64,000 nucleotides of DNA from IMG/VR virus record IMGVR_UViG_3300021963_000021, positions 124,001-188,000 of that record; one strand, 5' to 3'. Of this stretch, positions 33,615 to 47,897 are shown piece after piece (position 1 is the stretch's first letter; every line of letters starts with the position of its first letter). The notes below the pieces were generated by a model, which ran no database searches, was not told the origin of the DNA, and worked only from the letters and a program-made list of their open reading frames with translations. Both the position numbers and the translations under genes were made by a program.

Positions 33615-34045
33615 GAAACCTCAGACTTTCCTTTACTCAACGGAGTGACATTAATGAACCCTGCGTTTACACGCTCGGGCTCTGCTACTCCGTCATCGGC
33701 GAGCATGTTTCTAACAATATCACGGAACCAACGATCGACAATTTCTTCGTCAGCGTCGCCATCGAATCCGTAACCTTCTTGTTTTAATTGTAACACAAAT
33801 AATTCGTTCCAGTCAAGCTCAAAAAAACCGTTGCGTATATTATCCTTGTTAACATGAGTATCTAAAACGGATACCCAAGGTTCACCTTTTCTAGTAGCAC
33901 GTTCTTTTGGAGTCAGTTTAGCGAGTTCTTCTGCTTCTTTGGCTTTAAGTGCTTCTCCTTCGGCAACTTTCTTTTCTTGTTCTAATCTTGCTTTGTCTGC
34001 CTCTAATTTAGCAATACCTGTAATTTTTTTAAACCAATCTTTCAT
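33611..34045 (-). CDS. Hypothetical protein (likely start MKDWFK, TAATG-coupled to queE)
   Basis: Stop/start overlap at 34043-34047. Confidence 0.6.
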   Translation of the reverse strand: MKDWFKKITGIAKLEADKARLEQEKKVAEGEALKAKEAEELAKLTPKERATRKGEPWVSVLDTHVNKDNIRNGFFELDWNELFVLQLKQEGYGFDGDADEEIVDRWFRDIVRNMLADDGVAEPERVNAGFINVTPLSKGKSEVS

Positions 34046-34905
34046 TATGTACCCCACTCATTTTTAAATAACGGCACCTGTAAGCGGTCACTATAACGTA
34101 AACCATGTTTCATTGCCATAATAGCTACCGCTTTATTGTTTAATGCGTAAACACTTTCAACACCACCGACTGGCATTAGATAAACGTGTCCTTTAAATCC
34201 AGCGGCACGATATTCGCTTGCGGCTTTAAGCGCATAGTCGCGATCTTCTTCTGTGGCAATAACAAATTTCAAGTATGCTGTACCAACTTCTTCATACTCA
34301 CAAACAACCTCTGGAAGAATTGCTTCTTCCCACTTCTCACCACTACAAGGAAGTTTAGCACTGACACTGAATGTAACTTCTCTAGTGAAGTCTAAGTTAG
34401 GCATCTGCCACTGTAATAGATAGTCTTTAAATTCTGGACTTAGTTTTTGAGTACCATTTGTTTCAAAAGTAATTTCTTTCAATCCAGACATCTTAGGATT
34501 ATCTAGCAAGTCTGGATAAGCACGTTGCCAACCTAGCAATGGCTCGCCACCTGTAATTACGAGATGTTCGTCTAACCATTCATTATGTGGAAGGATTTCC
34601 ATAATTCGATCTGCTATAGCATCGCTTGTGAGCATTGGACTAAGGTCTTTGAATCTTGGATCCCAACTTGCGTAACTGTCACAGCCTGTACTAACAAGTG
34701 GAAGTTCTTCATATTTTGTAAATGGTTTTAAAGTATGTGCTAACGCAATGGTGTCAACTTCGTCACTTAGTTCACCACGTGGCATTCCGAAACCAGCACA
34801 TTTAAAGTTACAACCAAATGTACGTAAGAAAACAGAAGGCACACCCATATAGCGTCCTTCACCTTGTATGCTGTAAAACAGCTCTGCGATTTTGATTTTG
34901 CTCAT
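34045..34905 (-). CDS. queE: 7-carboxy-7-deazaguanine synthase (radical SAM)
   Basis: ELFYSIQGEGRYMGVPSVFLRTFGCN..C..CDS, VITGGEPLL, FETNGT, SDRLQ. Likely start ATG 34905. Confidence 0.88.
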   Translation of the reverse strand: MSKIKIAELFYSIQGEGRYMGVPSVFLRTFGCNFKCAGFGMPRGELSDEVDTIALAHTLKPFTKYEELPLVSTGCDSYASWDPRFKDLSPMLTSDAIADRIMEILPHNEWLDEHLVITGGEPLLGWQRAYPDLLDNPKMSGLKEITFETNGTQKLSPEFKDYLLQWQMPNLDFTREVTFSVSAKLPCSGEKWEEAILPEVVCEYEEVGTAYLKFVIATEEDRDYALKAASEYRAAGFKGHVYLMPVGGVESVYALNNKAVAIMAMKHGLRYSDRLQVPLFKNEWGT

Positions 34906-34911
34906 GTTTAT

Positions 34912-34941
34912 ATTATACACTCATTTCTTTAATTTTGTCAA
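34912..34941 (-). promoter_or_regulatory. Sigma70-type promoter TTGACA-18-TATAAT for queE
   Basis: Consensus hexamers at 34941-34936 and 34917-34912; ATG 6 nt downstream. Confidence 0.75.
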
Positions 34942-35509
34942 CTATACTTTTGAAAATAAATTCATTACCTTCTTTGGTATAATGATTAACATCACCACGG
35001 TTACTTGGCCAATACTCTGAAAAATCTAAATGATTCAATTCGTGACCAAAATGACTGCTGGCACTAGTATGGTCTAATGCTAGATATAGTGTTTGAACAT
35101 TTCTATCTATTTCACTGCGCATCAATCTATAGATATCTTCTTGATACTGTTCATCATAATGATGTTTAAACCAATTTAATGCTGTTACTAAACTTTCGTT
35201 TGATTTGTCTTGATTGTTTTCTAAATCATTAAAGATTAGATCACAGTTTTCGTGTAGCCCTTTTCTTTTTATAGGATGAGTGGGCGTGTGTACACGAAAG
35301 GGACTGGTATGACTAACAATCACTAGATTAAATTCTTTTGTGTTATTATTTTCTATTTGTTTTAAGATCTTATATTCACCAACACCTGCCTGCGCTACGT
35401 TTTTAACTGAATATTCTTTAGACAATAGATCTGCCCAACCAGGATACTCGCCGTTCCATTTGGCAGCAAAACTATCTCCGGCTAGCAGTATTTTTATTTT
35501 TTTAGCCAT
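34913..35509 (-). CDS. SGNH/GDSL-like hydrolase or acyltransferase
   Basis: LLAGDSFA, NVAQAGVG, terminal DVNHY. Confidence 0.65.
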   Translation of the reverse strand: MAKKIKILLAGDSFAAKWNGEYPGWADLLSKEYSVKNVAQAGVGEYKILKQIENNNTKEFNLVIVSHTSPFRVHTPTHPIKRKGLHENCDLIFNDLENNQDKSNESLVTALNWFKHHYDEQYQEDIYRLMRSEIDRNVQTLYLALDHTSASSHFGHELNHLDFSEYWPSNRGDVNHYTKEGNEFIFKSIVDKIKEMSV

Positions 35510-36309
35510 GGGATGAAACTTTCAGCTATCATGCGATGATAATCTTCGTTGTAATGTTCGTTGTCTGGAAGAAAGAATTTAGTATGATCGATAAACTTTT
35601 TACGAAAATAAGTTTCAACTGTTTGTTCGGAAATTTTAGTAGATTTTAATTTTGCGTAGTAATCTAATTTTTCCGGAAACTTAACACGATCAGTCATGTT
35701 AAACAGATACAGTTTACAGCCGTGTTCGTGGCACATAGTATCCATAACAAGTATATCTTTAAAAAAGTCTCTCTGTTCAAGATGTGTATTCAACTCAAAG
35801 AATAGTTTAACATCCATGTACGAATCTTTTCTAAGATCTGGTTTTATAAGACCGCTGGCATAATTAAAATTAATGTCTGCCATTCTTCCAAAATCTTCGT
35901 AAGTGGGTTTATTTAGAAGTTGGAATCTGTCATCTTTAAAAATCGTATCTTGGTATATGTCTACTAATCCGTGCTTGTTTTTATAAAATTCAGTAAAGTA
36001 ATCTGAACCAATAACATCAGCAGATAGTGTTTCATTGAATGCTAAGATAAAACGATTCCAGCTGGCTAGCAGTACAAACACTTCGTCGGTATCTGGATGT
36101 TTATCTAACATTGTTCTAAGCCAGTCTGTATATACTTTGTTTGCTGCTCCGGGAATAGCATACACTGACACTTGTTTGTTATTTTCTTTTGCGTAGAATT
36201 CTGCGTAGTTGTTGTCATTCCATAGGGAGTAACTACCAGGTCCCATCTTGCCTGGTTCTGTTATATAACCGCAGGTGTGACTATCGCCGAGAAATATTGC
36301 TCTACTCAT
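35494..36309 (-). CDS. SGNH/GDSL-like hydrolase or acyltransferase
   Basis: IFLGDSHT, AIPGAAN, terminal DNEHY. Confidence 0.65.
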   Translation of the reverse strand: MSRAIFLGDSHTCGYITEPGKMGPGSYSLWNDNNYAEFYAKENNKQVSVYAIPGAANKVYTDWLRTMLDKHPDTDEVFVLLASWNRFILAFNETLSADVIGSDYFTEFYKNKHGLVDIYQDTIFKDDRFQLLNKPTYEDFGRMADINFNYASGLIKPDLRKDSYMDVKLFFELNTHLEQRDFFKDILVMDTMCHEHGCKLYLFNMTDRVKFPEKLDYYAKLKSTKISEQTVETYFRKKFIDHTKFFLPDNEHYNEDYHRMIAESFIPWLKK

Positions 36310-36503
36310 TGAATACCTTCGCTTAACAGCAATCTACACATTAGCGCATCTTGTTCTGTTTTAAAATGAAACTTCATACATTCTGTGCTGACTTCTGTTG
36401 TATACCGTGTACCTGGTAAACCAAAGTGTTCCATAACGCTAGCACAGGTTTCATTCCACCAAATGTCTTTTTGATTTTGCCAGGGCACGTTTATTGTAAT
36501 CAT
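36306..36503 (-). CDS. Hypothetical protein
   Basis: 65 aa, ATGA-coupled. Confidence 0.55.
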   Translation of the reverse strand: MITINVPWQNQKDIWWNETCASVMEHFGLPGTRYTTEVSTECMKFHFKTEQDALMCRLLLSEGIQ

Positions 36504-36703
36504 TCTGGTACTTGTCTAAATCTAGTAATGAAGCTTTCTAAATAACAGCTATATTCTTTGTTGTTATCTGGATCTTCAGGATCAATAACTACATTTTCTT
36601 TTCTGTAATGTACCCAGGTGTGATCATGTATATCAATTACGTGTATCACACGAAACTTTTGACTAGTTGAACCTTCCCACAATGTACCTTCTTTAACGAT
36701 CAT
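36500..36703 (-). CDS. Hypothetical protein
   Basis: 67 aa, ATGA-coupled. Confidence 0.55.
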   Translation of the reverse strand: MIVKEGTLWEGSTSQKFRVIHVIDIHDHTWVHYRKENVVIDPEDPDNNKEYSCYLESFITRFRQVPE

Positions 36704-37092
36704 TTTTCGCCCTTTCGATAGTTACCTTTTCCTGGGATAGTGTTTCGAACACCGCCCACAGGATCTTCTACATCACCTTTGCGTCTTGGAATGAGATGTA
36801 CATGCGGATACATTACAGTCTGACCAGCAGCTTCACCCCAATTAAGACCAATATTAAATCCGTCCCATTCGCCAATGGCTACCATTTCTTTTCCGTGCTT
36901 GAAAGCATCGGCAAAGCAATCTTCAATAACTCCGTCGGCAGAGTATTGAGGAACGAAAAGAAGATGCCCGGGTGTACAAGGATATTTGTCCTCGAAAACC
37001 ACAACATGGAAGTCCTCCCGGATCTTTTCTGTCCATGGCGCTACGCCATTGGCCGCGGCATCTTCTAAAGTGTAATATTGTATCTTACTCAT
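36700..37092 (-). CDS. HIT-family nucleotide hydrolase
   Basis: DKYPCTPGHLLFVP..FNIGLNWGEAAGQTVMYPHVHLIPR. Confidence 0.9.
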   Translation of the reverse strand: MSKIQYYTLEDAAANGVAPWTEKIREDFHVVVFEDKYPCTPGHLLFVPQYSADGVIEDCFADAFKHGKEMVAIGEWDGFNIGLNWGEAAGQTVMYPHVHLIPRRKGDVEDPVGGVRNTIPGKGNYRKGEK

Positions 37093-37316
37093 CTTGAAAA
37101 GTCCTTGCGCTCTTGCGGTAGCGCATCTTCTTTAACAACAAACTCTCGTCCTAGCATACTGCCGACGTAGACTTTGGTGTTTTCTTTATATACCATTCGT
37201 ATCTTAACAGTTTGTAACGCTACTTCTAGGAAAGCCTTTGGCTTGTGTCCTAGTATATGAGCATCGAGGTCTTTGCCGTTATCAGTACAACGTATTTTTA
37301 TTTTCGAATCAATCAT
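37089..37316 (-). CDS. Hypothetical protein
   Basis: 75 aa, ATGA-coupled. Confidence 0.55.
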   Translation of the reverse strand: MIDSKIKIRCTDNGKDLDAHILGHKPKAFLEVALQTVKIRMVYKENTKVYVGSMLGREFVVKEDALPQERKDFSR

Positions 37317-37810
37317 TTAGTCCACCAATCTTCGTATGGAAAATCAATCCATATATTACGTTCTGCTTTATTAATTTCTTCCCCGGTGAAATCCATTTTA
37401 ACTTTACAGCTCGATGCTAGGTTATCAAACATCACAGCAAATTTCACATTGTTATTCCACACTTCGTTCCAGCGTGTGTGATCGGGCAAACAATTCGCTT
37501 GCCAGTCGTCCATGATCCAATTAAGTGTAGCACCTGTATCGTTGATATCGTCGGCAATTAAGATATTCTTTTCTTCGAACGCATCTTCTGCCATCCAGAG
37601 ATTGCTTTCGCAATCGTCACCATCTCTTAACTGTACTTTAATTGTTTGGCAAGGAATATTAAAATAGTGGCTAATCATTACAGCTGGCAGCAGCCCGCCT
37701 CGGGTTATTCCAACCACATAGTCGGGTTTCCAATCAGATAAACTAATATCTCTACAGATCTTATTGATCAACGCTTGGTACTGTAACCAGCTTACGTTAT
37801 ATTTTTCCAC
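37313..37810 (-). CDS. Type I phosphoribosyltransferase (xanthine/guanine PRT-like)
   Basis: VVGITRGGLLPA, ILIADDINDTGAT PRPP loop, WIDFPYE. Confidence 0.88.
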   Translation of the reverse strand: MEKYNVSWLQYQALINKICRDISLSDWKPDYVVGITRGGLLPAVMISHYFNIPCQTIKVQLRDGDDCESNLWMAEDAFEEKNILIADDINDTGATLNWIMDDWQANCLPDHTRWNEVWNNNVKFAVMFDNLASSCKVKMDFTGEEINKAERNIWIDFPYEDWWTK

Positions 37811-38270
37811 TCTCTAATTTCCTTACGGCAATATATTCCTCATGTTGAATCCATTTGTTATTGACTAGGAAACCCCAATCACGTTTATGTGGACCGGGCA
37901 TAAACAATGTCCAGGCTGTTACACCTTCTTTTAATTCAATGCGATGATAGCTTGTTGGCTTACAAATACGAAAATGCCCAGGGCCTCTCCAGTGGCGTAT
38001 CTCGCCAATCTTTTGGCCAATACTATTAAACTGTGGAACCCATTCATAGTACCCGCCTTTCAAAATTAGTGTAGCATATGGCCAAGGATGATCATGTACA
38101 TCGTCGGGATCGCCTTTTAAAAACTTGTGTAGAAACACATTAAAAGGAAACCAAGAACGATCTTTTAGAAAAAGGTAATACCTTTCTAAGTAAGGCTCAT
38201 TACTTTGCCTATCCATAATAATACGCTTGCGGCCAATGCTATCAAGCCAATTTAGAAAACGGTAAAACAT
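37797..38270 (-). CDS. Cupin-fold protein
   Basis: HDHPW..ILKGGYYE..YHRI..AWTLF metal-binding cupin pattern. Confidence 0.65.
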   Translation of the reverse strand: MFYRFLNWLDSIGRKRIIMDRQSNEPYLERYYLFLKDRSWFPFNVFLHKFLKGDPDDVHDHPWPYATLILKGGYYEWVPQFNSIGQKIGEIRHWRGPGHFRICKPTSYHRIELKEGVTAWTLFMPGPHKRDWGFLVNNKWIQHEEYIAVRKLESGKI

Positions 38271-38277
38271 TATATCC

Positions 38278-38511
38278 TCATTTTTTAGGTTTTGTTGCTT
38301 CTGGTGGTGTGTCAGCGGTTAATGGTCTTCCTTGATCATCATAATGAATATATGTGTCAATGTATCGTACCATACGAACCGGAACCCAATATGCCCTTAG
38401 TAATTTGTTAATACCAATAGCTGTAACGACAATTAATAGGACAGTTAGACAGCCAACAAATGTACCGCCAAACATTGACAGACCTGTAAGTATTGCTGAG
38501 CATTCATTCAT
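38278..38511 (-). CDS. Small membrane protein
   Basis: One long hydrophobic segment; SD AAGGA. Confidence 0.55.
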   Translation of the reverse strand: MNECSAILTGLSMFGGTFVGCLTVLLIVVTAIGINKLLRAYWVPVRMVRYIDTYIHYDDQGRPLTADTPPEATKPKK

Positions 38512-38524
38512 ATATTTCCTTTAG

Positions 38525-39349
38525 TTAGCGTGGAGCAAATTCTTGTTGAAGTTTAATATTATCCATGAACTCTTTTTTAGTTCCTGGATCATCTTTAAAC
38601 GCACCTTTTAATACTGTAGTCTGCGTTAAAGAACTGTGTGCCATAATACCGCGATTCTCACAGCAACCATGTGTTGCCTGTACATAGACTGCTACATTTT
38701 CTGAGTCAGTGGCTTTGCTAATCTCGCGGGCAATGTCGTTACAAAGTTCCTCCTGGAGAGTACCACGTCTTGCACACCACTGTGCGATGCGTGTGTACTT
38801 TGAGAGTCCAATGAGTTTTTGTGCGGCAATAATACCAATATAAGCAACGCCAGTAACGGGTTGATGATGATGGCTACACATACTGCGAAGCTCACTGCGA
38901 ACCACAAGCATACCTTCGTAGCGGTCCTCCGAGTCATTTGGGAAAGCGGTTGCGTCTGGTGCTGGGTCATACCTACCTGCCATTATTTCATTAAAGTACA
39001 TCTTAGCAAGCCTGCGGGCTGTGCCTTGACTGTTAGGATCATTTTCACGGTCAATTAGTAGCGTATCTAACACACGTTCAAACGCTTCTGTTGCTTCGTC
39101 GATAAGTTTTGCTTTATCTTCTTCAGTGACATAGTCACTGATATTGTCACCGGCCCAGAAGCGTTTTTTATCACGCTTCAATTTCGCACGAATAGCATCA
39201 CCTAAATAGCCTTCTGAATATCCTTTGTCGGACATCATTTCACCTGCTTTAACGTACACTTGCTTTTCTAATGGTACGTATTTTTCTTCAACGAACTTTT
39301 TGTCTAACGGTTCGTTGAGAACAGGATCTGGTGTAAATTCTTTTGTCAA
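38525..39349 (-). CDS. folE: GTP cyclohydrolase I
   Basis: SMCSHHHQP, IGLSKYTRI, LQEEL, HGCCENRG; TTG start with SD GGAG. Confidence 0.93.
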   Translation of the reverse strand: MTKEFTPDPVLNEPLDKKFVEEKYVPLEKQVYVKAGEMMSDKGYSEGYLGDAIRAKLKRDKKRFWAGDNISDYVTEEDKAKLIDEATEAFERVLDTLLIDRENDPNSQGTARRLAKMYFNEIMAGRYDPAPDATAFPNDSEDRYEGMLVVRSELRSMCSHHHQPVTGVAYIGIIAAQKLIGLSKYTRIAQWCARRGTLQEELCNDIAREISKATDSENVAVYVQATHGCCENRGIMAHSSLTQTTVLKGAFKDDPGTKKEFMDNIKLQQEFAPR

Positions 39350-39389: not shown

Positions 39390-40454
39390 TTATTTTAAAT
39401 TCTTTAGAAGATTTTCGCAACTGAAGAAGTTGTTTTTTAATTCTTCTACCTGTTTATTTAGGCTAGGTAAGAATTTTTCATAATTTTCCATGTACTGGAT
39501 TATCTTATGACACACTTCTTTTCTATGAACTTCATAGGATTCGAATGATTCTGTCCATTCGCTAGGATATTTGAATGGATCAAATGCCATTTCACTGTAG
39601 CTGAGTCTATCAGGAACCATAGGAATAGCATCTACAACTGCCCCTTCGTACCAACTGATACCTAGGGTTTCTTGTAGATTAGCACTGAATACTAGTTTAG
39701 CTTCACCTAGCATATTATGATATTCGTTCTTGGTCAACGGATATTCTTGGCATACTTTAAATTCGTATTGTGGAAGATGCTTTTTTAAATCAAGAAATAT
39801 ATCTAGCTGCTTTTCTGGAGCAATACGATGTGGGAATAGAATTAAGTTTTTCTTTTCCATTCCTTTATACATCATAAGAGCATTAGTCATATACTCCATT
39901 GGCCAGCCTGTGCGTATAACCTTACCGTCAAAGTCTGCGCCTGAAATAACTTTAGTTCCAAATAGATTTTCAAAGAACATCTTAATATGGAAGTTTGTGG
40001 CAAAGTAGTTGTGGTCAAACGCTTCGTAAAAACTTTTCTCAGCGTGTCTAACCCAAGGCTTGTTGCCAACAAGACGTCCTAGGAAGTCTTGAGGATCATA
40101 ACTGCCAGCATGCCACAGGCCATGAGTGACTACAGGAATATCCAGCAATTCACTCATGTACTTTAAGTTTATGATACCAGGGTGCCAAGCATCAGTAAAA
40201 ATAAAATGATCCCCAGGCTTAATTGCTCCGGCGCAAAATAAACGACCAATCTGCTCAACCTGACTAGACTTGTATATATTAGTCCCGCCAAAATTAAGAA
40301 AGGCCCCAGGAGTAGTGGCACTAGGAATATCCGTAGGGCCAGAGATAACTTGAACATTGTGTCCTGCCTTTCGTAGAAGTTCAGGTACATGAGTCTTCCA
40401 TTGACCCGTGTACCTGGTTTCAACCGCTTCTAGATCAACGAGAAAAACGGTCAT
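39390..40454 (-). CDS. GT-B fold glycosyltransferase (likely start MTVFLV at 40454)
   Basis: ILFPHRIAPEKQ, VFSANLQETLGISWYEGAVVDAIPMVPDRLSYSEM (GT-B E-x7-E-like region). Confidence 0.75.
   Translation of the reverse strand: MTVFLVDLEAVETRYTGQWKTHVPELLRKAGHNVQVISGPTDIPSATTPGAFLNFGGTNIYKSSQVEQIGRLFCAGAIKPGDHFIFTDAWHPGIINLKYMSELLDIPVVTHGLWHAGSYDPQDFLGRLVGNKPWVRHAEKSFYEAFDHNYFATNFHIKMFFENLFGTKVISGADFDGKVIRTGWPMEYMTNALMMYKGMEKKNLILFPHRIAPEKQLDIFLDLKKHLPQYEFKVCQEYPLTKNEYHNMLGEAKLVFSANLQETLGISWYEGAVVDAIPMVPDRLSYSEMAFDPFKYPSEWTESFESYEVHRKEVCHKIIQYMENYEKFLPSLNKQVEELKNNFFSCENLLKNLK
39392..39420 (-). promoter_or_regulatory. Possible sigma70 promoter TTGCGA-17-TAAAAT for folE
   Basis: Near-consensus hexamers with a 17-nt spacer. 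Confidence 0.45.
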
Positions 40455-41109: not shown

Positions 41110-41408
41110 GCCTTTAGTCCTTCCATAGTAATGATCTTACCGATCTCGTCACCTAGATCTTTATCGTCTGTGATAATATAAAGACCATTATTGCTGGTGT
41201 CACGCTTCATGTCGTATTTGCGTGTTTCGATGATAGTTCCGCCGTTTGCTCGGAATACCTTAAGGGTAAATCCGTTTGCGTCAATGGACCTTTCACCGGT
41301 AGAAAGCACTGCGGCTGTTCCCATTTTTATTCCTTCATCTTGGTATTTGTGGCTGTTATCCCACATATCGCGGGTCTTTTTATACAGCCATTTATCAAAC
41401 CATTTCAT
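41106..41408 (-). CDS. Hypothetical protein
   Basis: 100 aa, ATGA-coupled. Confidence 0.6.
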   Translation of the reverse strand: MKWFDKWLYKKTRDMWDNSHKYQDEGIKMGTAAVLSTGERSIDANGFTLKVFRANGGTIIETRKYDMKRDTSNNGLYIITDDKDLGDEIGKIITMEGLKA

Positions 41409-41947
41409 TTAATAATCTCATCGTTAGTGTAAGCACTCCACGGTGTGAACTTACTGCGGTCTTTTAAATCGTGTAGGCTATGACACCACACGCCGGGATT
41501 GGTTGCTTTAAAATCTTTGTCATCGATTTTAAGCATTGTATTGTAATTCCATAGTTTGATATATGGGATAGGTATACGGATTTGCGGAATAAACATCTCG
41601 TAGTCGTTTAAGCAGCCGTCATTGAACTCTTCTACTTGATTTAGTGGAATATCTAGACTACACCAATACCCTTGATCGAGAAAATGTGTAATCATATCTT
41701 CCCATGCCTTGTGCTCATCATATCCTGTAGGATTGAAACTATGATTAGCACCAAAGAAGATATGTTTAATATGTTTGCTAGTGTCGAGCAAACAATTCAT
41801 ATCACCAAGAATGTGGTCAATGACTTGTTCATTTTGAACACCAGTTACAAACAATGTACGCATACCAAACGTGGGAGTATTCTCGACTTCGTTACCGATG
41901 AAAAAATTCACATCTTCTAATGTGCCAGTGGAATAATCACGCTTCAT
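41405..41947 (-). CDS. Hypothetical enzyme-like protein within the deazaguanine locus
   Basis: 180 aa with motif-like blocks GNEVENTP, HIFFGANHSF, KIDDKDFKATNPGVWCH. Confidence 0.6.
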   Translation of the reverse strand: MKRDYSTGTLEDVNFFIGNEVENTPTFGMRTLFVTGVQNEQVIDHILGDMNCLLDTSKHIKHIFFGANHSFNPTGYDEHKAWEDMITHFLDQGYWCSLDIPLNQVEEFNDGCLNDYEMFIPQIRIPIPYIKLWNYNTMLKIDDKDFKATNPGVWCHSLHDLKDRSKFTPWSAYTNDEIIK

Positions 41948-42114
41948 TGTTTAAACCAGTTTCTAATTGACTTCATTAAATTATAGTATCTTGCTTTGTA
42001 GTTGTCAACCAGGATATCATCAATCATTGGGCGACGATGTGGGCAGCGACCTTGTCTCCAGTCGCAACCTGCGTGAATTTCTTCACCGCAAGTTTCGCAT
42101 TTTCTAGCTACCAT
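41944..42114 (-). CDS. 56-aa Cys-rich (zinc-finger-like) protein missing from the ORF track
   Basis: Hand translation: MVARKCETCGEEIHAGCDWRQGRCPHRRPMIDDILVDNYKARYYNLMKSIRNWFKQ. Fills the gap and overlaps both neighbours. Confidence 0.65.
   Translation of the reverse strand: MVARKCETCGEEIHAGCDWRQGRCPHRRPMIDDILVDNYKARYYNLMKSIRNWFKQ
41980..42008 (-). promoter_or_regulatory. Perfect sigma70 promoter TTGACA-17-TATAAT
   Basis: Hexamers at 42008-42003 and 41985-41980, upstream of the 41947 / DpdL-like / GT genes. Confidence 0.8.
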
Positions 42115-42338
42115 GTGTTTACGTCAGTGATATCAACGGTGGTGTCGATGTCCTTGTCGGCATCGTTGAATAGGTTGAACTTAACAACAACGGCAGGACC
42201 AATTCCGCTGGTGTGACTTTCTTCGAGAGTGAACCACTCTACTTCTTTGAAGTGAGCAGATATTTTAGCAAGTTTTTCAATTTGTCCTTTGTTAAGAGCA
42301 AACTGTGTTGGTACGTAGTCTTTATCTTTCTTCGTCAT
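42108..42338 (-). CDS. Hypothetical protein
   Basis: 76-aa ORF. Confidence 0.55.
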   Translation of the reverse strand: MTKKDKDYVPTQFALNKGQIEKLAKISAHFKEVEWFTLEESHTSGIGPAVVVKFNLFNDADKDIDTTVDITDVNTW

Positions 42339-42531
42339 AATCTATGCTTTCGTGATCATGTTCCCACTGTAGTCTAGTAAGTCTAGCAAGTTCGTCCTTA
42401 TAAAGCAACTTCTTTTTCTTTAATTCGGACAAATTCTCATCGGTAAATTTACCATTTCTTTCTAACGCAGAAATCTGTTCGTCAATTAATCTGTGTGTTT
42501 CGGTTAACGTTTTGATTCGAGATTCGTACAT
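42322..42531 (-). CDS. DUF465/YdcH-like small coiled-coil protein
   Basis: L..H..ID.QI..LE....LSELKKKKLLYKDEL pattern. Confidence 0.65.
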   Translation of the reverse strand: MYESRIKTLTETHRLIDEQISALERNGKFTDENLSELKKKKLLYKDELARLTRLQWEHDHESIDYDEER

Positions 42532-42546: not shown

Positions 42547-44079
42547 TCAATTGGCTGTTTGCTCTAGAAATTCGTGTTCTAATTCTTCGAGCATATCTTC
42601 GTCTAACACAGGCATTGCTGACACTTGTGACACAGACTTGTCTAATACTACTTCATCTGATTCAAAGTGTTTGTTAAACGTGTTGTTGGCGTTTCCACCA
42701 CGTAGACGCATACCCATCATTTTGTTCAGCATAGGTCTAGCATCTTCAATCATCTGCATTGGAGTTTCGCTGGTAAACAATTCTTCAACGAAGTTATTGA
42801 AGTACAGGATGTTACGAGGTACCCATTCAGAGTATTCATCGCTCTTATCCATGTCTTTGAGATTCTTCCATTGACGCCAGTTAGGACTTACTTTGGCAGT
42901 TTCAATATCCATTAAATTGTTAGCACGTTGTACAGCAACGATGTGACAATATGTATTATGTGCCATCATTAGCGCATAACCAAAGCTGTCCCAAGAAGTT
43001 TTTCCTTCTTTGCCGATTTTGTTTAACATTCCCGGCTTGTACCAGCAGATGTCTCCGATGTTAAGGCGCCTGCCAATTTCTGATTCAAACGGGAAGGGGA
43101 TGTTAAAAGCCTGGCTAATTGCTTTGTTGTCTGGGGCCTTGTCCATGATGACTGACCAGCGTTTGTTGGTGTGCTGGGCATTTGTGTAGACAAGCCCGTG
43201 GGCTGTAGCAATGAAGGGTGATGCGCAATCAAAAGATATGGTAAAGTTTTCATTCACGTGCTTCCTTACTTGGCGTTGGATTAAAGTTAAGTAACAAGAC
43301 CAATCTAACTGTGCTGTACCCAAGAAGTGCATCCAGTTACGATCGTCTAACAGTTTCTCATCACGCAGGATAATGAGACGTTTTAGTGCGACTTCCATAT
43401 CACACATATTCTTACCGCCCATTGCCCACCCTTCTGTAGGCAAGTGTTTAACTGCTTCGTACCAAGCCTGTGCTGTTTCCCAGTCACTGCCTTGTAGAAC
43501 GTTAAGGAATTTAGTTTGACCTAAGCGATTACGTATAAAGTAATCATTGTTGTGAAGTGTTTTATCTAAACAGTCTTGAAAACTCTTTAATCCTGTCTTT
43601 GGACTATGGATATGATCGCTAGCCCATGTCGGGACGTCTAATAACATTGACCAATCAGCAGTTAATTCTAGCCAGTTAAGGATGCTGTCACGAGTTTTAT
43701 TGGCAGCAGCACCTTCAAAGTTCATCCAATCAAACTTAAGAACACCTTTACCGATCTGATAGCCGCCGGAGTCGCCTACAATAAGTGTGTTGTTACGATC
43801 TCTACTTTGAATCATAGCATCTTGAATCATTGTCTTTTCAAGATCTAATTGTGCGTGGCCTGCTGAGTAAAGACCATATTTGTAAGTAAAGTATCCTTGC
43901 TCAGGATTAAGGAAGTTCATTCCTTCAATGCCGCGATCAAACCCTTGCGGAATACGATCGTTAGGAACAAACTCGCTGAATCTTTGTTTGCTTACATATG
44001 TTGAATAAAAACAACTAATCGCAGGCAAATAGACTGCGTAGTCTTTCTGTAGGGGTGTTAAATTAACTGGTGGTCTCAT
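42547..44079 (-). CDS. TGT-fold deazaguanine transglycosylase-like protein (divergent DpdA, DpdA3-like)
   Basis: TGT motifs in order: GDSGGYQ, MLLDVP, LNVLQG, GWAMGG, MHFLG, SFDCASP, LMMAHN. No CxCxxC zinc site of tRNA TGTs. Lies near folE/queE. Confidence 0.75.
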   Translation of the reverse strand: MRPPVNLTPLQKDYAVYLPAISCFYSTYVSKQRFSEFVPNDRIPQGFDRGIEGMNFLNPEQGYFTYKYGLYSAGHAQLDLEKTMIQDAMIQSRDRNNTLIVGDSGGYQIGKGVLKFDWMNFEGAAANKTRDSILNWLELTADWSMLLDVPTWASDHIHSPKTGLKSFQDCLDKTLHNNDYFIRNRLGQTKFLNVLQGSDWETAQAWYEAVKHLPTEGWAMGGKNMCDMEVALKRLIILRDEKLLDDRNWMHFLGTAQLDWSCYLTLIQRQVRKHVNENFTISFDCASPFIATAHGLVYTNAQHTNKRWSVIMDKAPDNKAISQAFNIPFPFESEIGRRLNIGDICWYKPGMLNKIGKEGKTSWDSFGYALMMAHNTYCHIVAVQRANNLMDIETAKVSPNWRQWKNLKDMDKSDEYSEWVPRNILYFNNFVEELFTSETPMQMIEDARPMLNKMMGMRLRGGNANNTFNKHFESDEVVLDKSVSQVSAMPVLDEDMLEELEHEFLEQTAN

Positions 44080-44428
44080 AATCTCTCGCTAGTTTTGCTG
44101 TAATGTTTAAATGTTGTCTTGCCTGTTCTAGGTTGTCTAATGCTATTTTAACAGCCTTATTCTCATTTGCCAAGCTCTGCCACATCTTTTCTTCGTCACG
44201 TTTCTTACGTGCCCATTGTACTATATCTAGTACATCTTGATCTAGGCCTACAGTGGCATAGCTGGTACTCATACTAATCCAACTACTACCATCGAACACC
44301 TGAATGTCACTGCCCCAAACACGCATCATGCCTGTTACGGGGTTATTGGTATTTTGATTAACATAAGGTACGCTAGTGTTACCACCAGATACTGTTACGC
44401 CGCTAACGCCTTGTAGACCTTTGATCAT
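44063..44428 (-). CDS. Hypothetical protein
   Basis: 121-aa ORF. Confidence 0.6.
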   Translation of the reverse strand: MIKGLQGVSGVTVSGGNTSVPYVNQNTNNPVTGMMRVWGSDIQVFDGSSWISMSTSYATVGLDQDVLDIVQWARKKRDEEKMWQSLANENKAVKIALDNLEQARQHLNITAKLARDYETTS

Positions 44429-44429
44429 A

Positions 44430-45164
44430 TTACGCCTGTGCTGGAATAATGTACTTGTAAACTGCTACACCGCTGTCAAGAGTGATTTGAATAGCACCTT
44501 CGTTTGACAAAGACATCTTTGTGTTGTTTACATCAGCAATCTTTAAAATGCTTAAGATTGGCATCACTGGCCAAGTCCAGCCACGATCTAGTTTACCTGC
44601 TACATTTTGTGCGAATACAAATTCGCCACCGTGTGTTGACAAGTCACCAAATGTAAACTTTAGATTTCCACCTTCTGTCTTAGCAAGGAATGTTGGATGT
44701 TCGTTGTGAGCACCTGCTTGGAAGTTAAAACGTGTAACAGAAGCAACGCTTGGCTCTAGTTCAACGTCCCACTTAACACCACGGAATTTCACAGACTTCA
44801 TCTTTTCGTTGATGACTTCTTGATTCATAAAACGATAGTCGTTTTTAAAGTCGCCGTCTTTGTTTTCAAAGTGAATGCCAACTGGAATAGTTTCTCCGTT
44901 GCGTTCTGCTGTAGTGATACTGATTTTAGCATCATCTTTGTATTCGTTGCCATCGAGCAAATACTTTAGTTTATTAAGCTGAGGCATACCAAATGTACCA
45001 ATCATGTCTGGATATGGCTGGTATGTAGTAGCTTCCATAATAACAGAACGGTCTTCAGCCATTGAAAAGAATGTAGTTGACTCTTCTGTTCCTGTAATTT
45101 TAACTGTAGTCAAGAACCCTAGGTTCTGTGTATGACTAACGATGTCTTGTAAAATATCTTTCAT
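44430..45164 (-). CDS. Putative DNA sliding clamp (gp45/PCNA-like)
   Basis: 244 aa, alternating beta/alpha pattern, C-terminal YKYIIPAQ; directly downstream of DNA polymerase. Confidence 0.55.
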   Translation of the reverse strand: MKDILQDIVSHTQNLGFLTTVKITGTEESTTFFSMAEDRSVIMEATTYQPYPDMIGTFGMPQLNKLKYLLDGNEYKDDAKISITTAERNGETIPVGIHFENKDGDFKNDYRFMNQEVINEKMKSVKFRGVKWDVELEPSVASVTRFNFQAGAHNEHPTFLAKTEGGNLKFTFGDLSTHGGEFVFAQNVAGKLDRGWTWPVMPILSILKIADVNNTKMSLSNEGAIQITLDSGVAVYKYIIPAQA

Positions 45165-45187
45165 TAAGATTCTCCGGTTATATTAAG

Positions 45188-45216
45188 ATTATATTTAGAT
45201 TTATGTGAAAAAGCAA
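45188..45216 (-). promoter_or_regulatory. Promoter TTGCTT-17-TATAAT with an overlapping TAAATA
   Basis: Hexamers 45216-45211 and 45193-45188; TAAATA 45197-45192; SD GGAG downstream. Confidence 0.6.
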
Positions 45217-45224
45217 GAGCTAAA

Positions 45225-47897
45225 TCACTCAAAATCAAACAATTTACTGAATGTGTTATCACTGCGTGTTGAACTAATGTCCCATTCCAACACTCCGATT
45301 AGGTTTTCTAACTTTTCATCGATAACTGTGGTTTCCATTTCGGCATCATCGAACGGTAGTTCTTTGAACCATTGCGGCAAACGTAGTTCGTCTACCGGAT
45401 ACGCTACTGAAGTATAGCCCATTGGGTTATCTCTGACTTTACAAACAATCACTTTAGCACCGTCAGTGATGCCCATTGAGTACTTGTCATCCATCATGCG
45501 TTTGAGAGTATTCCAATTAAGACTTGCTCTAACATGACCAGGCATGTTAGTCTTACCAGCCTTCTTCTCTTTTGCGGCGTATTCTGTAATGTTGTTGGCA
45601 CGTTTGGGAGAGCCTTTCTCCCAACCTGGGCGAGTTTTAAATTCTGTACGGAAATTAGTGATGTGTTCTAGTACTTCTTCTTTTGAAGCACCGGTTAGCA
45701 CTTTTTCTAATACATCACTTAAGAAGTTTTGAATGACTACTGGAGTATCACTGCGTTTAAGGTCTAGACCCATGGCCTTGATCTTACCAGGTTTACCATC
45801 TACATCACTGCGCTTGCCTTCTTTGTCATAGTAAAGCACAGCATAACGCTTCTTAGTAATGAACAGACCTTTTGACGCAACAATTTCACGACCTGCTTTA
45901 ATAACTTCGCCACGAGTCTTTGGACAATGGAACTGTTCTGTCATCATTTTAGGAAAACTCTGATTGACTTCGTCGGCTATTTGATCATACAACTGTACTA
46001 CAGTTTCTTTACTCCAAGGCAAGTGCCCAGATTCAATTTCTTTTCTCAGTACAGGGTATGCTGAAAAGTAGCAGGAGTCAGTATCACCATAGATAACAGC
46101 CTTGCCTTTGTAATCATATTCGCCACAAATGATTTCATTTATCTTTGAGGCCATGTGTTTGACAATAGTCCTGCCTGTGAGTGTAGTGGATTGACCGATT
46201 CTATTATCAAAGAAGCGGCAACCAGGATTAAGAATAGCGCCATAAAGACTATTGAGGTTAATTTTCTTAACAAGCTGTCGTTTGTCCCAGTATTCTTCTT
46301 CAATTTTATTTCCACTTGCTATACATTCCTTTAGTTTAGCTTGCATTTCTTTACGTTCAGCATACCAACGCTTTAGCAGTCCTGGAATAATACCATCTTT
46401 TTCATAGGTAAAGATAGTTCCGTTAGAACTGATCATCCAGGGCTGACCAGAATCAAATATGAGATCATTGATCTGTGCGCCAGTTAATGTATCACTGCCG
46501 CCATTTTCCCAGTCAATGACGATTTCTTTAGCAATGTTTCGTTCCATTACATACTCATACTCCAAGCTACCGAACATTCCTTCCCATGCTGCCGCAAAAG
46601 ATTTACCATGCCGCACCATTTGATCGTCAATATAGTTCTTTGTGTAGTCTGGACGAAGTTGACCGACAATGGTTTCCGGTCCCATGTTTAGCGCACGAAT
46701 CGCAGACGGATACAGTGAGTTCAAGTCAACTGATCCGATCCATTCGTGAATGCCTTTCTTGGGATAAGCAACATAAGCACCTGCTGCCTGTGTGGATTCT
46801 GTGTCGTCACGTCTCTTACGATTCGGTACAACAAAGCCTCTACGATGTGCTTCGTTGATAATTGCCTGCTCAGTAACAGCAACCGCACCCATCGCAGTCT
46901 GTAGTAACACAGTATTTTCGTGGGCAATCTTGTTAGCTAGATCCAAAAACTGTAGTTTCTTATCTAACTTGTCTAGCAGTGCTGTGTCTTGTCTGTTGTA
47001 TTCGATGAATTTTTTAAAGTCGTTGTTGTAAAGTTGATCCAGTGTACCTTCGTAGACTGTTTTGTTTTCACCGATCTCCATTTCACCAATAGCATCTAGT
47101 CGATATGTGTGTCGTTCTTCATATGTGTACTTTCTATAAAGTTCGAGACTATCAAGATGTACACGCCCTACTAGATCATATGTGACAGCCTGGCGACCAA
47201 ACTTTTCAAACTCACGTTTTTTAGGAAACTGATTCCATAAACAGAATCGACGTGTATCTTCTTTTGACAACGCTTTTGTTACACGGTTAACGGTGTATGG
47301 AATATCGAAACCTTCTGAATTCCAACCACTTAACACATCAGCATCTTCAATGAGTGTTAAGAAGTTGTCAAGAAGATCTGCTTCGTTGTCAAAAAGATAT
47401 GTGTTTGGAAATTCTGCTACTGCCTTTTCTGCTTCTGCCATTGACATAGTCTTTGGAGGTACAGCAAGACAGATTAATGTGTTAAGCCATTGTAAGTGAA
47501 CAGCAATCGCAGTGATCGGCATAAACGCATCATCTGGTGAAGCATACCCACGTTCGGGATCAAAGTCTACTTCAATGTCAAAGAATGCTACGTTTAGTTT
47601 TGGGGAATCTTGATTAAGATAGTTTTCTTCAAGACAACGGAATATAGGATTAATATCAGATTCATAAAGTTTCTGACTTCCGTGTATTTTTTGTTCTTTG
47701 TGGAATTCTTTTAGATTTTTACAAGTAACACGACTCAGCGGAATGCCGTGAGTACTAACATACTTGCCTTTAGGATCTTGATAATAAAAAAGATATTTGG
47801 CAGCATATTCTTTAAACTGTCTGCGACCATCTTTATCTCTTTCGACAACAGAGATAAGATCACTGTCTCTGTCGTAGTAAGCATCTACGTAACTCAT
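45225..47897 (-). CDS. Family B DNA polymerase (gp43-like); likely start MSYVDA at 47897
   Basis: Exo motifs FDIEVD, GWNSEGFDIPY, YNRQD; pol motifs SVDLNSLYPS, KINLNSLYG, YGDTDS, KKRYA; SD AAGGAG. Confidence 0.95.
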   Translation of the reverse strand: MSYVDAYYDRDSDLISVVERDKDGRRQFKEYAAKYLFYYQDPKGKYVSTHGIPLSRVTCKNLKEFHKEQKIHGSQKLYESDINPIFRCLEENYLNQDSPKLNVAFFDIEVDFDPERGYASPDDAFMPITAIAVHLQWLNTLICLAVPPKTMSMAEAEKAVAEFPNTYLFDNEADLLDNFLTLIEDADVLSGWNSEGFDIPYTVNRVTKALSKEDTRRFCLWNQFPKKREFEKFGRQAVTYDLVGRVHLDSLELYRKYTYEERHTYRLDAIGEMEIGENKTVYEGTLDQLYNNDFKKFIEYNRQDTALLDKLDKKLQFLDLANKIAHENTVLLQTAMGAVAVTEQAIINEAHRRGFVVPNRKRRDDTESTQAAGAYVAYPKKGIHEWIGSVDLNSLYPSAIRALNMGPETIVGQLRPDYTKNYIDDQMVRHGKSFAAAWEGMFGSLEYEYVMERNIAKEIVIDWENGGSDTLTGAQINDLIFDSGQPWMISSNGTIFTYEKDGIIPGLLKRWYAERKEMQAKLKECIASGNKIEEEYWDKRQLVKKINLNSLYGAILNPGCRFFDNRIGQSTTLTGRTIVKHMASKINEIICGEYDYKGKAVIYGDTDSCYFSAYPVLRKEIESGHLPWSKETVVQLYDQIADEVNQSFPKMMTEQFHCPKTRGEVIKAGREIVASKGLFITKKRYAVLYYDKEGKRSDVDGKPGKIKAMGLDLKRSDTPVVIQNFLSDVLEKVLTGASKEEVLEHITNFRTEFKTRPGWEKGSPKRANNITEYAAKEKKAGKTNMPGHVRASLNWNTLKRMMDDKYSMGITDGAKVIVCKVRDNPMGYTSVAYPVDELRLPQWFKELPFDDAEMETTVIDEKLENLIGVLEWDISSTRSDNTFSKLFDFE

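Follow-up and report, generated by a model that had tools for sequence, protein, structure and literature searches.

A giant freshwater phage with a 364-kb genome (IMG/VR) carries, next to its DNA polymerase gene, a set of genes predicted to make a 7-deazaguanine base and to exchange it for guanine in DNA. A glycosyltransferase gene is part of the set in all 74 related loci examined, so the final base may be a sugar-decorated guanine substitute that has not yet been described. This differs from the phiST-type 7-deazaguanine system in the glycosyltransferase and in several conserved proteins that accompany it. No chemistry was tested, and there is no chemical evidence for any modified base in this phage.

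A gene run beside the DNA polymerase

We analysed a 64,000-nucleotide stretch of this genome (the window). A preliminary description, made from sequence alone, proposed that one co-oriented run of genes links the replication machinery to 7-deazaguanine synthesis. This observation holds: all of the genes listed there exist as one minus-strand run from 34045 to 47897. The features of the locus are as follows, with counts referring to 74 related IMG/VR loci.

45225..47897 (-), family B DNA polymerase (PolB; ATG at 47897), the upstream boundary of the conserved block; PF00136 4e-37, PF03104 7e-20; 71-91% identical in related loci
44430..45164 (-), clamp-like protein; phrog_12062 (function unknown), 1.4e-36
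44063..44428 (-), 121-aa unknown, variably present (35/74); no family hit above noise
42547..44079 (-), 510-aa tRNA-guanine-transglycosylase (TGT)-fold, DpdA-like transglycosylase, a predicted guanine/7-deazaguanine base-exchange enzyme (74/74)
42322..42531 (-), 69-aa DUF465 protein, variable (30/74); PF04325 1.8e-11
42108..42338 (-), 76-aa unknown, variable (24/74); no family hit
41405..41947 (-), 180-aa conserved unknown (g180), part of the core module (74/74)
41106..41408 (-), 100-aa unknown, frequent (54/74); no family hit
40714..41109 (-), 131-aa DpdL homologue, a QueD-like T-fold paralogue and proposed CDG decarboxylase (74/74)
40435..40704 (-), 89-aa protein (g89) with a basic C-terminal tail, invariably between DpdL and the glycosyltransferase (74/74); no family hit
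39390..40454 (-), GT4-type (Glycos_transf_1) glycosyltransferase, 354 aa, predicted to put a sugar on the deazaguanine base (74/74)
38525..39349 (-), GTP cyclohydrolase I (FolE) with an N-terminal extension (73/74); PF01227 6e-40, phrog_2197
38278..38511 (-), 77-aa predicted membrane peptide with a hydrophobic stretch, rare (2/74)
37797..38270 (-), cupin of the 'cysteine dioxygenase' type with an HDH metal motif (70/74); phrog_4786 6.5e-36
37313..37810 (-), Gpt-like purine phosphoribosyltransferase (PRTase; 63/74); PF00156 6e-14
37089..37316 (-), 75-aa unknown, variable (21/74)
36700..37092 (-), HIT-family nucleotide hydrolase/transferase (47/74); PF01230 1.3e-9
36306..36703 (-), two small unknowns of 67 aa (16/74) and 65 aa (61/74); no family hit
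35494..36309 (-), SGNH/GDSL-like protein 1, optional accessory (13/74)
34913..35509 (-), SGNH/GDSL-like protein 2, optional accessory, always paired with the first (13/74)
34045..34920 (-), QueE-like radical-SAM 7-carboxy-7-deazaguanine (CDG) synthase (74/74); phrog_2076 5e-51, weak Radical_SAM Pfam hit
32628..34057 (-), the downstream boundary of the conserved block, a 148-aa protein and a 5'-3' exonuclease/RNase H (PF02739 1e-19), in the same order in PA5oct and Phosso

The 510-aa protein has no Pfam, PHROG, NCBIfam or PADLOC hit, and a structure search against the TGT superfamily had been named in advance as a test of its identity. Its AlphaFold2 model (pLDDT 90.7, pTM 0.90) has only TGT structures as top Foldseek hits (E 6e-8), with a VIA Z of 18.7 to TGT over about 305 residues. 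The aspartates of the DSGG, LDxP and FDxASP motifs never vary; D103, S104, G106, D148, H251 and D284 are invariant in 52 diverse relatives. The protein is not demonstrably DpdA3, as hhalign against DpdA3 of Cellulophaga phage phiST gives only 70.7% probability over a partial match. The comparison with DpdL, also proposed beforehand, was positive: the 131-aa protein carries L-G-H-P-H-R-H-I-F, which matches the LxxxHRHxF motif defined for DpdL (PMC10516641), and tblastn aligns it to ACP17 (54%), PA5oct (54%), Phosso (67%) and phiST (33%).

The glycosyltransferase most likely starts at the ATG at 40454, and an identical 354-aa protein is on record. The window protein itself scores below the Pfam threshold and its AlphaFold2 model was poor (pLDDT 54); however, 6 of 8 relatives hit PF00534 (best 6.8e-12), 2 hit PF20706 (GT4-conflict), and Atlas neighbours are PF00534/PF13692 clusters. 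FolE, PRTase, HIT and QueE are confirmed. The best NCBIfam hit of the PRTase is xanthine PRTase at 8e-11, below cut-off, and its PDB matches are purine and xanthine-guanine PRTases. The two SGNH assignments are weak, with Pfam E-values of 0.009 and 0.007 (below cut-off) for the first and second protein; GDS blocks are visible in both, near the N terminus in the first, which also has DxxH near the C terminus and DUF6071/Lipase_GDSL look-alikes in the Atlas at 0.96. The clamp assignment is plausible but was not confirmed here; the Phosso homologue is annotated as a sliding clamp and the PA5oct homologue as a structural protein.

The statement that queC, queF and canonical queD are absent from the window is correct. 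The rest of the genome had been singled out as the place to look for the missing genes, and there we found queD at C1:214652-215041, about 27 kb outside the window, whereas queC and queF are absent from the genome. The pathway is complete to CDG. The genome also lacks the ThyA/dCMP-hydroxymethylase family, leaving no hydroxymethyl-pyrimidine acceptor for the glycosyltransferase.

Conservation across related loci and cultured phages

Conservation of the gene neighbourhood had been set out as a criterion for the proposed system, with the accessory genes expected to accompany the dpdA-like gene. In the 74 related loci, the core comprises the TGT-like gene, g180, DpdL, g89, the glycosyltransferase, FolE and QueE. 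The 180-aa protein, previously called an orphan, is not one: it also has homologues in ACP17 (ASD50402, E 2.6e-14) and in the relative L179, although Pfam, PDB and Atlas searches gave no lead to its function. By contrast, the SGNH pair is optional, and the cupin is near-core in this clade only. The cupin is absent from the five cultured phages inspected that carry the glycosyltransferase-DpdL module; its homologues occur in 102 other phage records and are not next to que genes in the three inspected.

The glycosyltransferase lies beside or within 3 kb of DpdL in seven distant cultured lineages (PA5oct, Phosso, ACP17, BUDD, X1, BUCT-ZZ01 and BCSR5), with gene order otherwise shuffled. Five of these were inspected and each encodes a TGT-like gene, next to the glycosyltransferase in four; in Phosso the TGT-like gene lies about 170 kb from the rest of the module. 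The TGT-like genes of ACP17, BUDD and BUCT-ZZ01 are homologous to the window protein by hhalign (96.8%, 95.6% and 93.1%, respectively). Six DpdL lineages lack this glycosyltransferase (the phiST group, MA9V-3, RHph_I1_18, Ahp1, Bakedbeans and D479). Relatives add sugar-nucleotide genes directly after the glycosyltransferase: GHMP kinase, NTP_transferase and HIT in L179, where the HIT copy is 52% identical, and UDP-Glc/GDP-Man dehydrogenase in 8/74 loci. The PRTase recurs beside QueE in PA5oct and BUCT-ZZ01. Distant members of the TGT-like family sit beside QueD/QueC/QueE/FolE, or in integrase-flanked bacterial islands next to conflict-type or OGG-like genes, which fits a DNA-acting enzyme.

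Among the closest known systems is the locus of the Pseudomonas jumbo phage PA5oct (Wroclawvirus; EST35_0311-0325), in which the order is PolB, clamp-like, TGT-like (44% identity), glycosyltransferase (41%), DpdL (54%), PRTase, QueE, 148-aa protein and RNase H. PA5oct lacks the 180-aa protein, the cupin, HIT, the SGNH pair and FolE within the locus, and its PolB is split by a homing endonuclease. PA5oct DNA resists G-containing restriction enzymes (PMC12191111), the nearest experimental hint, although the chemical identity of its modified G is not reported in the papers that we consulted.

A predicted route to a glycosylated 7-deazaguanine

The interpretation in the preliminary description, that G is replaced by a CDG-derived base and that the glycosyltransferase, cupin and SGNH genes may tailor it into an undescribed hypermodified base, is partly supported. 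A QueC-less pathway joined to a TGT-fold enzyme among replication genes, and a glycosyltransferase that is a real, conserved member of the module, make an end product beyond plain 2'-deoxy-7-deazaguanosine (dDG) a reasonable expectation. The roles proposed for the SGNH pair and the cupin are not supported as stated, and the likely role of the PRTase, with the nucleotide-level route it allows, had been overlooked.

We favour guanine replacement that probably yields a glycosylated 7-deazaguanine, a reading in which we have only moderate confidence. In this view, FolE, QueD and QueE convert GTP to CDG, and the DpdL homologue processes CDG, by published proposal through decarboxylation to 7-deazaguanine. 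The 510-aa enzyme, a deep and unnamed branch of the DpdA-like transglycosylases, would exchange guanine in phage DNA for this base at or just after replication. The glycosyltransferase would then add a sugar from an NDP-sugar, either to the base in DNA or to the free base before insertion; this phage would take the donor from its host, whereas some relatives encode their own sugar-activating genes. The PRTase most likely returns the excised guanine to the GTP pool that feeds the pathway, the HIT protein may serve nucleotide-sugar chemistry, and the optional SGNH pair may add or remove acyl groups on the sugar. The role of the cupin is left open. Our analyses establish folds, families, motifs, synteny and co-occurrence, whereas every chemical step, the DNA target, and the sugar and its attachment point are inferred.

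Two published observations are consistent with this route. In huimycin biosynthesis the glycosyltransferase HuiG glycosylates a 7-deazapurine base (bioRxiv 10.64898/2026.04.15.718813), and expression of ACP17 dpdL with its dpdA in E. coli gave no dDG, the authors allowing that other enzymes may be needed (PMC10516641). Other considerations weigh against it. There are no mass-spectrometry or signal-level data for this phage or any glycosyltransferase-bearing relative, 7-deazaguanine has no hydroxyl, so that the acceptor atom is unknown, and DpdL's decarboxylase activity has never been shown. The six DpdL lineages without this glycosyltransferase, among them phiST with plain dDG in its DNA, the glycosyltransferase fold that could not be modelled, the score of the window protein below the Pfam threshold and the distant TGT-like gene of Phosso also count against it. 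The genome also strongly avoids TGCA (133 seen, 1536 expected), which fully protective G replacement would not obviously require.

Alternative readings and comparison with known systems

A less likely possibility is that the product is plain dDG and that the glycosyltransferase, merely sharing an early replication-module operon with the pathway, acts on a phage or host protein, an envelope glycan or a small molecule. phiST has FolE, QueD, QueE, DpdL and a TGT-like gene, and its G is fully replaced by dDG (PMC10516641); several DpdL phages lack the glycosyltransferase, and 7-deazaguanine offers no obvious acceptor. Against this are the persistent proximity of the glycosyltransferase to DpdL described above and the fact that the phiST TGT-like protein is short (259 aa) and only marginally related to the long form that travels with the glycosyltransferase.

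It is also unlikely, although possible, that the base enters before replication, at the nucleotide level. The PRTase would couple CDG or 7-deazaguanine to PRPP, as TubE does in tubercidin biosynthesis, the nucleotide would be converted to the dNTP, the adjacent PolB would incorporate it, and the TGT-fold protein would have a secondary role such as repair or proofreading of residual G. The PRTase beside QueE in three lineages, the position of the locus between PolB/clamp and the 5'-3' exonuclease, and the use of CDG with a PRTase and a decarboxylase in tubercidin clusters (bioRxiv 10.64898/2026.04.15.718813) are compatible with this route. However, the PRTase is missing in 11/74 relatives and in ACP17, Phosso and BUDD, whereas the TGT-like gene is never missing, and the best matches of the PRTase are Gpt/XPRT-type salvage enzymes. 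There is no dGTP-removing enzyme in the locus (MazG-like genes lie far away), and the literature finds a DpdA in all deazaguanine phages and argues for post-replicative insertion (PMC10516641).

It is very improbable that the TGT-fold enzyme modifies tRNA rather than DNA, acting on the phage's own Asn, Asp, His and Tyr tRNAs or on host tRNAs, with the pathway supplying a queuosine-like base for translation: the genome encodes 31 tRNAs, including all four GUN-anticodon (queuosine-family) tRNAs, and the closest solved structures are tRNA-guanine transglycosylases, but there is no HMMER-level match to PF01702 and no QueC, QueF or QueA/QueG-type route to a tRNA-type base, the position among replication genes is conserved across lineages, distant relatives sit in the bacterial islands noted above, and PA5oct, with the orthologous gene set, has restriction-resistant DNA.

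The locus shares with the phiST-type dDG system (FolE-QueD-QueE-DpdL-DpdA3; Cui et al., NAR 2023, PMC10516641) a QueC-less route to CDG, a DpdL homologue with the LxxxHRHxF motif, a TGT-superfamily enzyme next to the pathway and near the polymerase gene, and the expected replacement of G by a CDG-derived base. It differs in the glycosyltransferase, the 180-aa and 89-aa proteins and, usually, the Gpt-like PRTase, none of which we saw in phiST; conversely, phiST has a MazG-like gene in its cluster. Bacterial and phage DpdA1, DpdA2 and bDpdA, which insert preQ0, share the TGT fold, the catalytic aspartates and clustering with deazaguanine genes, and some distant members of the family studied here also sit with QueC. 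However, there is no HMMER match to PF01702, NCBIfam or any PADLOC model, and without QueC in this genome preQ0 cannot be the substrate.

HuiG is likewise encoded next to a 7-deazaguanine pathway and uses an NDP-sugar on a pyrrolopyrimidine acceptor, and huimycin-family clusters carry PF13439 (Glyco_transf_4) glycosyltransferases, the GT4 type. Huimycin is, however, a free secondary metabolite made from O-methylated preQ0 in actinomycetes, with no nucleic-acid insertion enzyme involved; homology between HuiG and the phage glycosyltransferase was not examined. The T4 alpha/beta-glucosyltransferases and other phage sugar hypermodifications of 5-hydroxymethyl- or 5-hydroxy-pyrimidines also involve a phage-encoded glycosyltransferase decorating a non-canonical DNA base, with lineage-specific variation in the sugar genes, but the acceptor there is a pyrimidine hydroxyl, whereas the glycosyltransferase described here travels with purine (deazaguanine) genes.

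Genomic setting and the gene run

The window is bases 124001-188000 of an IMG/VR virus record that is 363,943 bp in length and was judged complete by CheckV; it represents a jumbo phage with 41% G+C and 31 tRNA genes. Megablast of the locus against cultured phages found nothing, and thus no close cultured relative. Near-identical sequence occurs in freshwater, riverine and estuarine metagenomes, including DNA libraries and libraries labelled metatranscriptomic; the latter may also hold DNA, so transcription is not shown, and assembled contigs carry no information on base modification. Raw nanopore signal or SMRT kinetics at G positions in these samples were not examined.

ORF listing and translation confirm a single co-oriented run on the minus strand, as the preliminary description had it, and its observation of these genes holds. 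The features located here are as follows.
45225-47897, minus strand: DNA polymerase B (PolB)
42547-44079, minus strand: DpdA-like protein with a predicted tRNA-guanine transglycosylase (TGT) fold
42322-42531, minus strand: 69-aa DUF465 protein, between the TGT-like gene and g180, a conserved 180-aa protein
40454, minus strand: ATG start of the 354-aa glycosyltransferase (GT)
34045-34920, minus strand: QueE

Searches of Pfam and PHROGs confirm PolB, FolE, a type-I phosphoribosyltransferase (PRTase), a HIT protein, QueE and a cupin of the ‘cysteine dioxygenase’ type. Among nine small ORFs, Pfam gave nothing for eight, and the ninth is the DUF465 protein (PF04325, 1.8e-11), present in 30 of 74 related loci. 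The clamp call rests on phrog_12062 and on an annotation in phage Phosso. The two SGNH calls are plausible, not firm: the GDS (block I), GxN (block III) and DxxH (block V) blocks are visible and mostly invariant, and ESM Atlas look-alikes fall in DUF6071/Lipase_GDSL clusters, but the Pfam scores are below cut-off and profile searches of PDB were empty for both proteins, so that membership of the SGNH/GDSL hydrolases is left undecided. Searches of NCBIfam and PADLOC returned nothing for the TGT-like protein, DpdL, the GT, g180, the cupin or the SGNH proteins.

The predicted TGT-fold protein and the 7-deazaguanine pathway

The protein at 42547-44079 has no Pfam, PHROG, NCBIfam or PADLOC hit, a profile search of PDB with its sequence was empty, and PF01702 finds nothing in the whole genome. 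Its translation shows DSGGYQ, LDVP, LQG, GWAMGG and FDCASP motifs. An exhaustive HMMER search found 946 clusters at 50% identity, and in an alignment of 52 relatives (27–85% identity) D103, S104, G106, D148, P150, H251 and D284 are invariant. The catalytic and substrate-binding aspartates of the superfamily (in the DSGG and LDxx motifs and at the nucleophile after the last barrel strand) are thus present, although their equivalence to Z. mobilis D102/D156/D280 rests on motif reading and not on a residue-level superposition. AlphaFold2 on that alignment gave a confident model (pLDDT 90.7, pTM 0.90). A structural comparison with TGT had been set out in advance as a check, and the Foldseek top 50 PDB hits are all tRNA-guanine transglycosylase (E about 1e-7), with VIA-align giving Z 18.7 over about 305 residues covering model residues 11-426. 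The call of a TGT-type (beta/alpha)8 barrel in the preliminary description is therefore right.

The subfamily is less clear. The protein is not recognised by PF01702 or by the PADLOC and NCBIfam models through which a member of DpdA1, DpdA2 or bDpdA might be identified, and only 2 of the 52 relatives hit PF01702, at E 0.007. Nor does it match PF20314 (DUF6610), the family of DpdA4 from archaeal viruses: there is no Pfam family at E <= 0.01 for the protein itself, or at E <= 0.1 in the 52 relatives. By hhalign, the family profile aligns to the 424-aa ACP17 protein (96.8%, E 2e-10), the 437-aa BUDD protein (95.6%) and the 416-aa BUCT-ZZ01 protein (93.1%). Against DpdA3 of phiST (CGPG_00065) it reaches only 70.7% probability (E 3.8e-5) over 83 columns, and tblastn in both directions finds nothing; Campylobacter-phage members were not compared, and this partial match neither places the protein in DpdA3 nor excludes it. 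We therefore did not file it under DpdA3, and treat it as an unnamed deep branch of DpdA-like enzymes. No joint phylogeny or HHpred network of this family with DpdA1-4, bDpdA, ArcS and TGT was made.

Distant members of the family lie next to QueD-QueC-QueE, next to FolE-QueE, or in integrase-flanked bacterial islands beside an OGG-like gene and conflict-system genes. This favours DNA over tRNA as the target, although exchange of guanine in DNA was not assayed. The bacterial and island members (loci L182:6472-10032 and L177:8001-10977) are paired with an unannotated protein of about 510 aa. In L182 there is also an OGG-like (PF21790) gene, between two integrases and next to GTPase-centred conflict-system genes, and this may be a Dpd-like defence module of a new type.

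The 131-aa protein carries L-G-H-P-H-R-H-I-F, the LxxxHRHxF signature that Cui et al. (PMC10516641) give for DpdL in place of the QueD signature CxxxHGH. The proposed comparison with DpdL bears this out: tblastn matches the protein to DpdL of ACP17 (54.5% identity, E 5e-35) and of phiST (CGPG_00067; 32.8%, E 3e-8), over more than 90% of the length, and to that of PA5oct (54%) and Phosso (67%), and phrog_17812 is hit at 4e-32. The motif is also present in L179, a more distant metagenomic relative. Decarboxylation of 7-carboxy-7-deazaguanine (CDG) to 7-deazaguanine by DpdL was not measured here and is also unproven in the literature, in which heterologous tests failed (PMC10516641).

FolE and QueE are in the locus. 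The rest of the genome had been named as the place to look for queC and queD, and a PTPS/QueD gene was found at C1:214652-215041 (C1 being the contig of this genome), about 27 kb beyond the window. This QueD (L004:1375-1938, minus strand, which is C1:214526-215089) has C-S-T-L-H-G-Y where the signature is CxxxHGH, and lies among ORFs that look like DxD-type glycosyltransferases, for example L004:522-1217. QueC is absent; the one weak hit, at C1:349956, was rejected as a TilS-like PP-loop protein. QueF is also absent. The phage can therefore make CDG and whatever DpdL makes from it, but not preQ0. There are two MazG-like signals in the genome (C1:291471-291617 and 191225-191410), one above the Pfam cut-off and neither in the locus; in phiST, by contrast, the MazG-like gene is part of the cluster.

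The glycosyltransferase and conservation of the module

Conservation of the gene neighbourhood, and co-occurrence of the accessory genes with the dpdA-like gene, had been put forward as tests of the reading. Two scans of IMG/VR gave 160 related loci, the second scan, with a diverse GT alignment, returning only the same close clade. We examined the 74 loci that span clamp to QueE and contain the GT. Because the loci were found through DpdL or the GT, the 100% figures for those two genes are by construction; the others are not. The TGT-like gene is linked to 7-deazaguanine precursor genes in all 74 loci, whereas the SGNH pair is present in few.

Table. Genes of the module and the number of related loci, of 74, that contain them.
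TGT-like, g180, DpdL, g89 (an 89-aa protein), GT, QueE: 74
FolE: 73
Cupin: 70
PRTase: 63
65-aa protein: 61
HIT: 47
SGNH pair: 13

A 354-aa protein identical to the GT is on record. On its own the GT scores below the Pfam threshold (E 0.084), but of eight aligned relatives six hit Glycos_transf_1 (PF00534, best 6.8e-12), three hit PF13692 and two hit PF20706, the ‘GT4 in conflict systems’ model, and Atlas neighbours agree. The C-terminal E-x7-E motif, which marks GT4, is conserved as E262 and E270 (E-T-L-G-I-S-W-Y-E), with E270 invariant even against ACP17, BUDD and BUCT-ZZ01. A profile search of PDB was empty. AlphaFold2 on a shallow alignment (19 sequences at 70% identity or more) gave pLDDT 54 and pTM 0.48, too poor for a fold search, so the model speaks neither for nor against a GT-B fold with two Rossmann domains.

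The position of the GT is the main new result. tblastn places a homologue directly beside DpdL in Phosso, PA5oct, ACP17 and BUCT-ZZ01, and within 1.4–3 kb in BUDD, X1 and BCSR5. These include T4-like phages, a cyanophage, Xanthomonas phages of about 200 kb and two unrelated jumbo groups, and gene order around the pair differs between them. Of these seven we inspected five (PA5oct, Phosso, ACP17, BUDD and BUCT-ZZ01), and each also encodes a TGT-like gene, which lies next to the GT in four and elsewhere in the genome in Phosso. PA5oct and ACP17 both carry TGT-like, GT, DpdL and QueE. DpdL lineages without this GT exist, namely the phiST group, MA9V-3, RHph_I1_18, Ahp1, Bakedbeans and D479; phiST is the one whose DNA was shown to hold plain 2'-deoxy-7-deazaguanosine (dDG).

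L179 (PolB 49% identical) keeps TGT-like, g180, DpdL, GT, HIT and QueE, and inserts a GHMP-family sugar kinase and a sugar-1-phosphate nucleotidyltransferase directly after the GT; these two genes and the HIT protein, which is 52% identical to that of the window, follow the GT directly (L179:11843-14138). Eight of the 74 loci have a UDP-glucose/GDP-mannose dehydrogenase directly after the GT, and fifteen have a GFO/IDH/MocA oxidoreductase plus an ADH-like gene beside the TGT-like gene. This is what a sugar-transferring step with lineage-specific donors would look like. The genome has no ThyA/dCMP-hydroxymethylase family (no PF00303 in 364 kb), so a T4-like pyrimidine acceptor for glucosylation is not available.

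Further genes are inserted in some relatives. Two of the 74 fully spanned loci carry a tryptophan-halogenase-like flavoenzyme (PF04820, 4e-30) between the TGT-like gene and g180 (L057:6918-8138 and the matching gene in L044; L057 is a further, truncated locus); such enzymes act on electron-rich pyrrole and indole rings, which is what 7-deazaguanine is. An HhH-GPD base-excision glycosylase domain protein (PF00730, 2.4e-7) sits inside the locus in 20 of 74 relatives (L151:2868-3293 and 19 other related loci), and Phosso has a gene annotated ‘glycosylase’ between the clamp and DpdL (L003:11379-11912); this window has no such gene. A dCMP/cytidine deaminase gene is inserted between HIT and QueE in 10 of 74 relatives (L036:6906-7424 and 9 other related loci).

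The protein g180 is conserved in all relatives, in L179 and in ACP17, but has no recognisable fold or family, with no lead from ESM Atlas and nothing from a profile search of PDB; its structure was not predicted. The cupin is near-core in this clade, but we rejected it as a pathway enzyme shared across lineages: it is absent from the five cultured module-bearing phages, and its homologues in 102 other phage records sit away from que genes in the three inspected (BcepNazgul, MiCath and mycobacteriophage Reindeer). We leave its role open.

Interpretation and other features of the genome

We consider it probable that the locus is a DpdL-type 7-deazaguanine DNA-modification system. Its conserved GT4, 180-aa and 89-aa partners set it apart from the characterised phiST system. 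The most likely meaning is a glycosylated deazaguanine, which we hold only tentatively, at best about as likely as not; the SGNH pair, and the many variable genes in relatives, would be optional tailoring steps. Our results concern sequence, predicted structure and gene neighbourhood, whereas the chemistry is inferred: nothing chemical was tested, and the acceptor atom, the sugar and the order of glycosylation and insertion were not identified. The inference in the preliminary description that G is substituted by a CDG-derived base, with the GT, cupin and SGNH genes pointing to an undescribed hypermodified base, is thus supported in part, for the pathway and the GT but not for the cupin or for the SGNH pair, which is optional. 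In huimycin biosynthesis the glycosyltransferase HuiG glycosylates a 7-deazapurine base, which shows that the chemistry is feasible.

One alternative concerns the PRTase, which is closest to Gpt/XPRT-type purine salvage enzymes and recurs beside QueE in PA5oct and BUCT-ZZ01. Base exchange releases one guanine per modified site, so salvage into the GTP pool is the simplest role. A TubE-like role on CDG, as in tubercidin clusters, is the alternative and supports a pre-replicative rival; only a Gpt-like PRTase was seen, its sequence does not reveal substrate specificity, and a UbiD-type decarboxylase was not sought.

In the broadest reading, which is possible but tentative, a large, globally distributed clade of freshwater jumbo phages replaces guanine in its DNA with a sugar-bearing 7-deazaguanine, and distant cultured phages such as PA5oct, ACP17 and Phosso may do the same. 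The base would be installed by an unnamed deep branch of the DpdA/TGT superfamily and decorated by a dedicated GT4 glycosyltransferase, with lineage-specific diversification through sugar-nucleotide enzymes, SGNH esterases, oxygenases and even a halogenase-like flavoenzyme. As far as we know, this would be the first glycosylated purine analogue described in DNA. Eight 7-deazaguanine DNA bases are known (PMC10516641), and none carries a sugar.

Phage DNA hypermodifications defeat restriction enzymes and CRISPR, and have supplied enzymes and chemistries for biotechnology. The module is very common in nature, as both the TGT-like protein and the GT have thousands of environmental relatives, and it is present in cultured, clinically studied phages such as PA5oct, whose modified G is still chemically undefined in the papers we could read, with no mass reported in those searched. 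Were a new base to exist, the GT, the 180-aa protein and the long TGT-like enzyme would be the candidate enzymes. This could also explain why Cui et al. could not obtain dDG from ACP17 dpdL plus dpdA in E. coli (PMC10516641); they allowed that other enzymes may be needed, and their text does not mention a glycosyltransferase.

The tetranucleotide TGCA is almost purged from the genome, with 133 sites, 13 of them in the window, against 1536 expected from a Markov model. AGCGCT occurs 0 times against 29 expected, and the ratios for CGCG and AAGCTT are 0.36 and 0.34. This looks like restriction-site avoidance despite the predicted G modification; the strong avoidance of TGCA is unexplained and cautions against assuming full protection from restriction.

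Of the tRNA genes, 28 form a cluster at C1:232111-237855, outside the window, which itself has no tRNA gene. The cluster includes Asn-GTT, Asp-GTC, His-GTG and Tyr-GTA, the queuosine-family anticodons, and a tRNA with a CTA (amber-reading) anticodon lies at 339529-339603. The 210-aa PP-loop protein of TilS (lysidine synthase) type (C1:349923-350555, which is L175:1468-2100) lies directly upstream of a tRNA with a CAT anticodon at 350564-350640, suggesting that the phage brings its own tRNA-Ile2 and the enzyme that modifies it.
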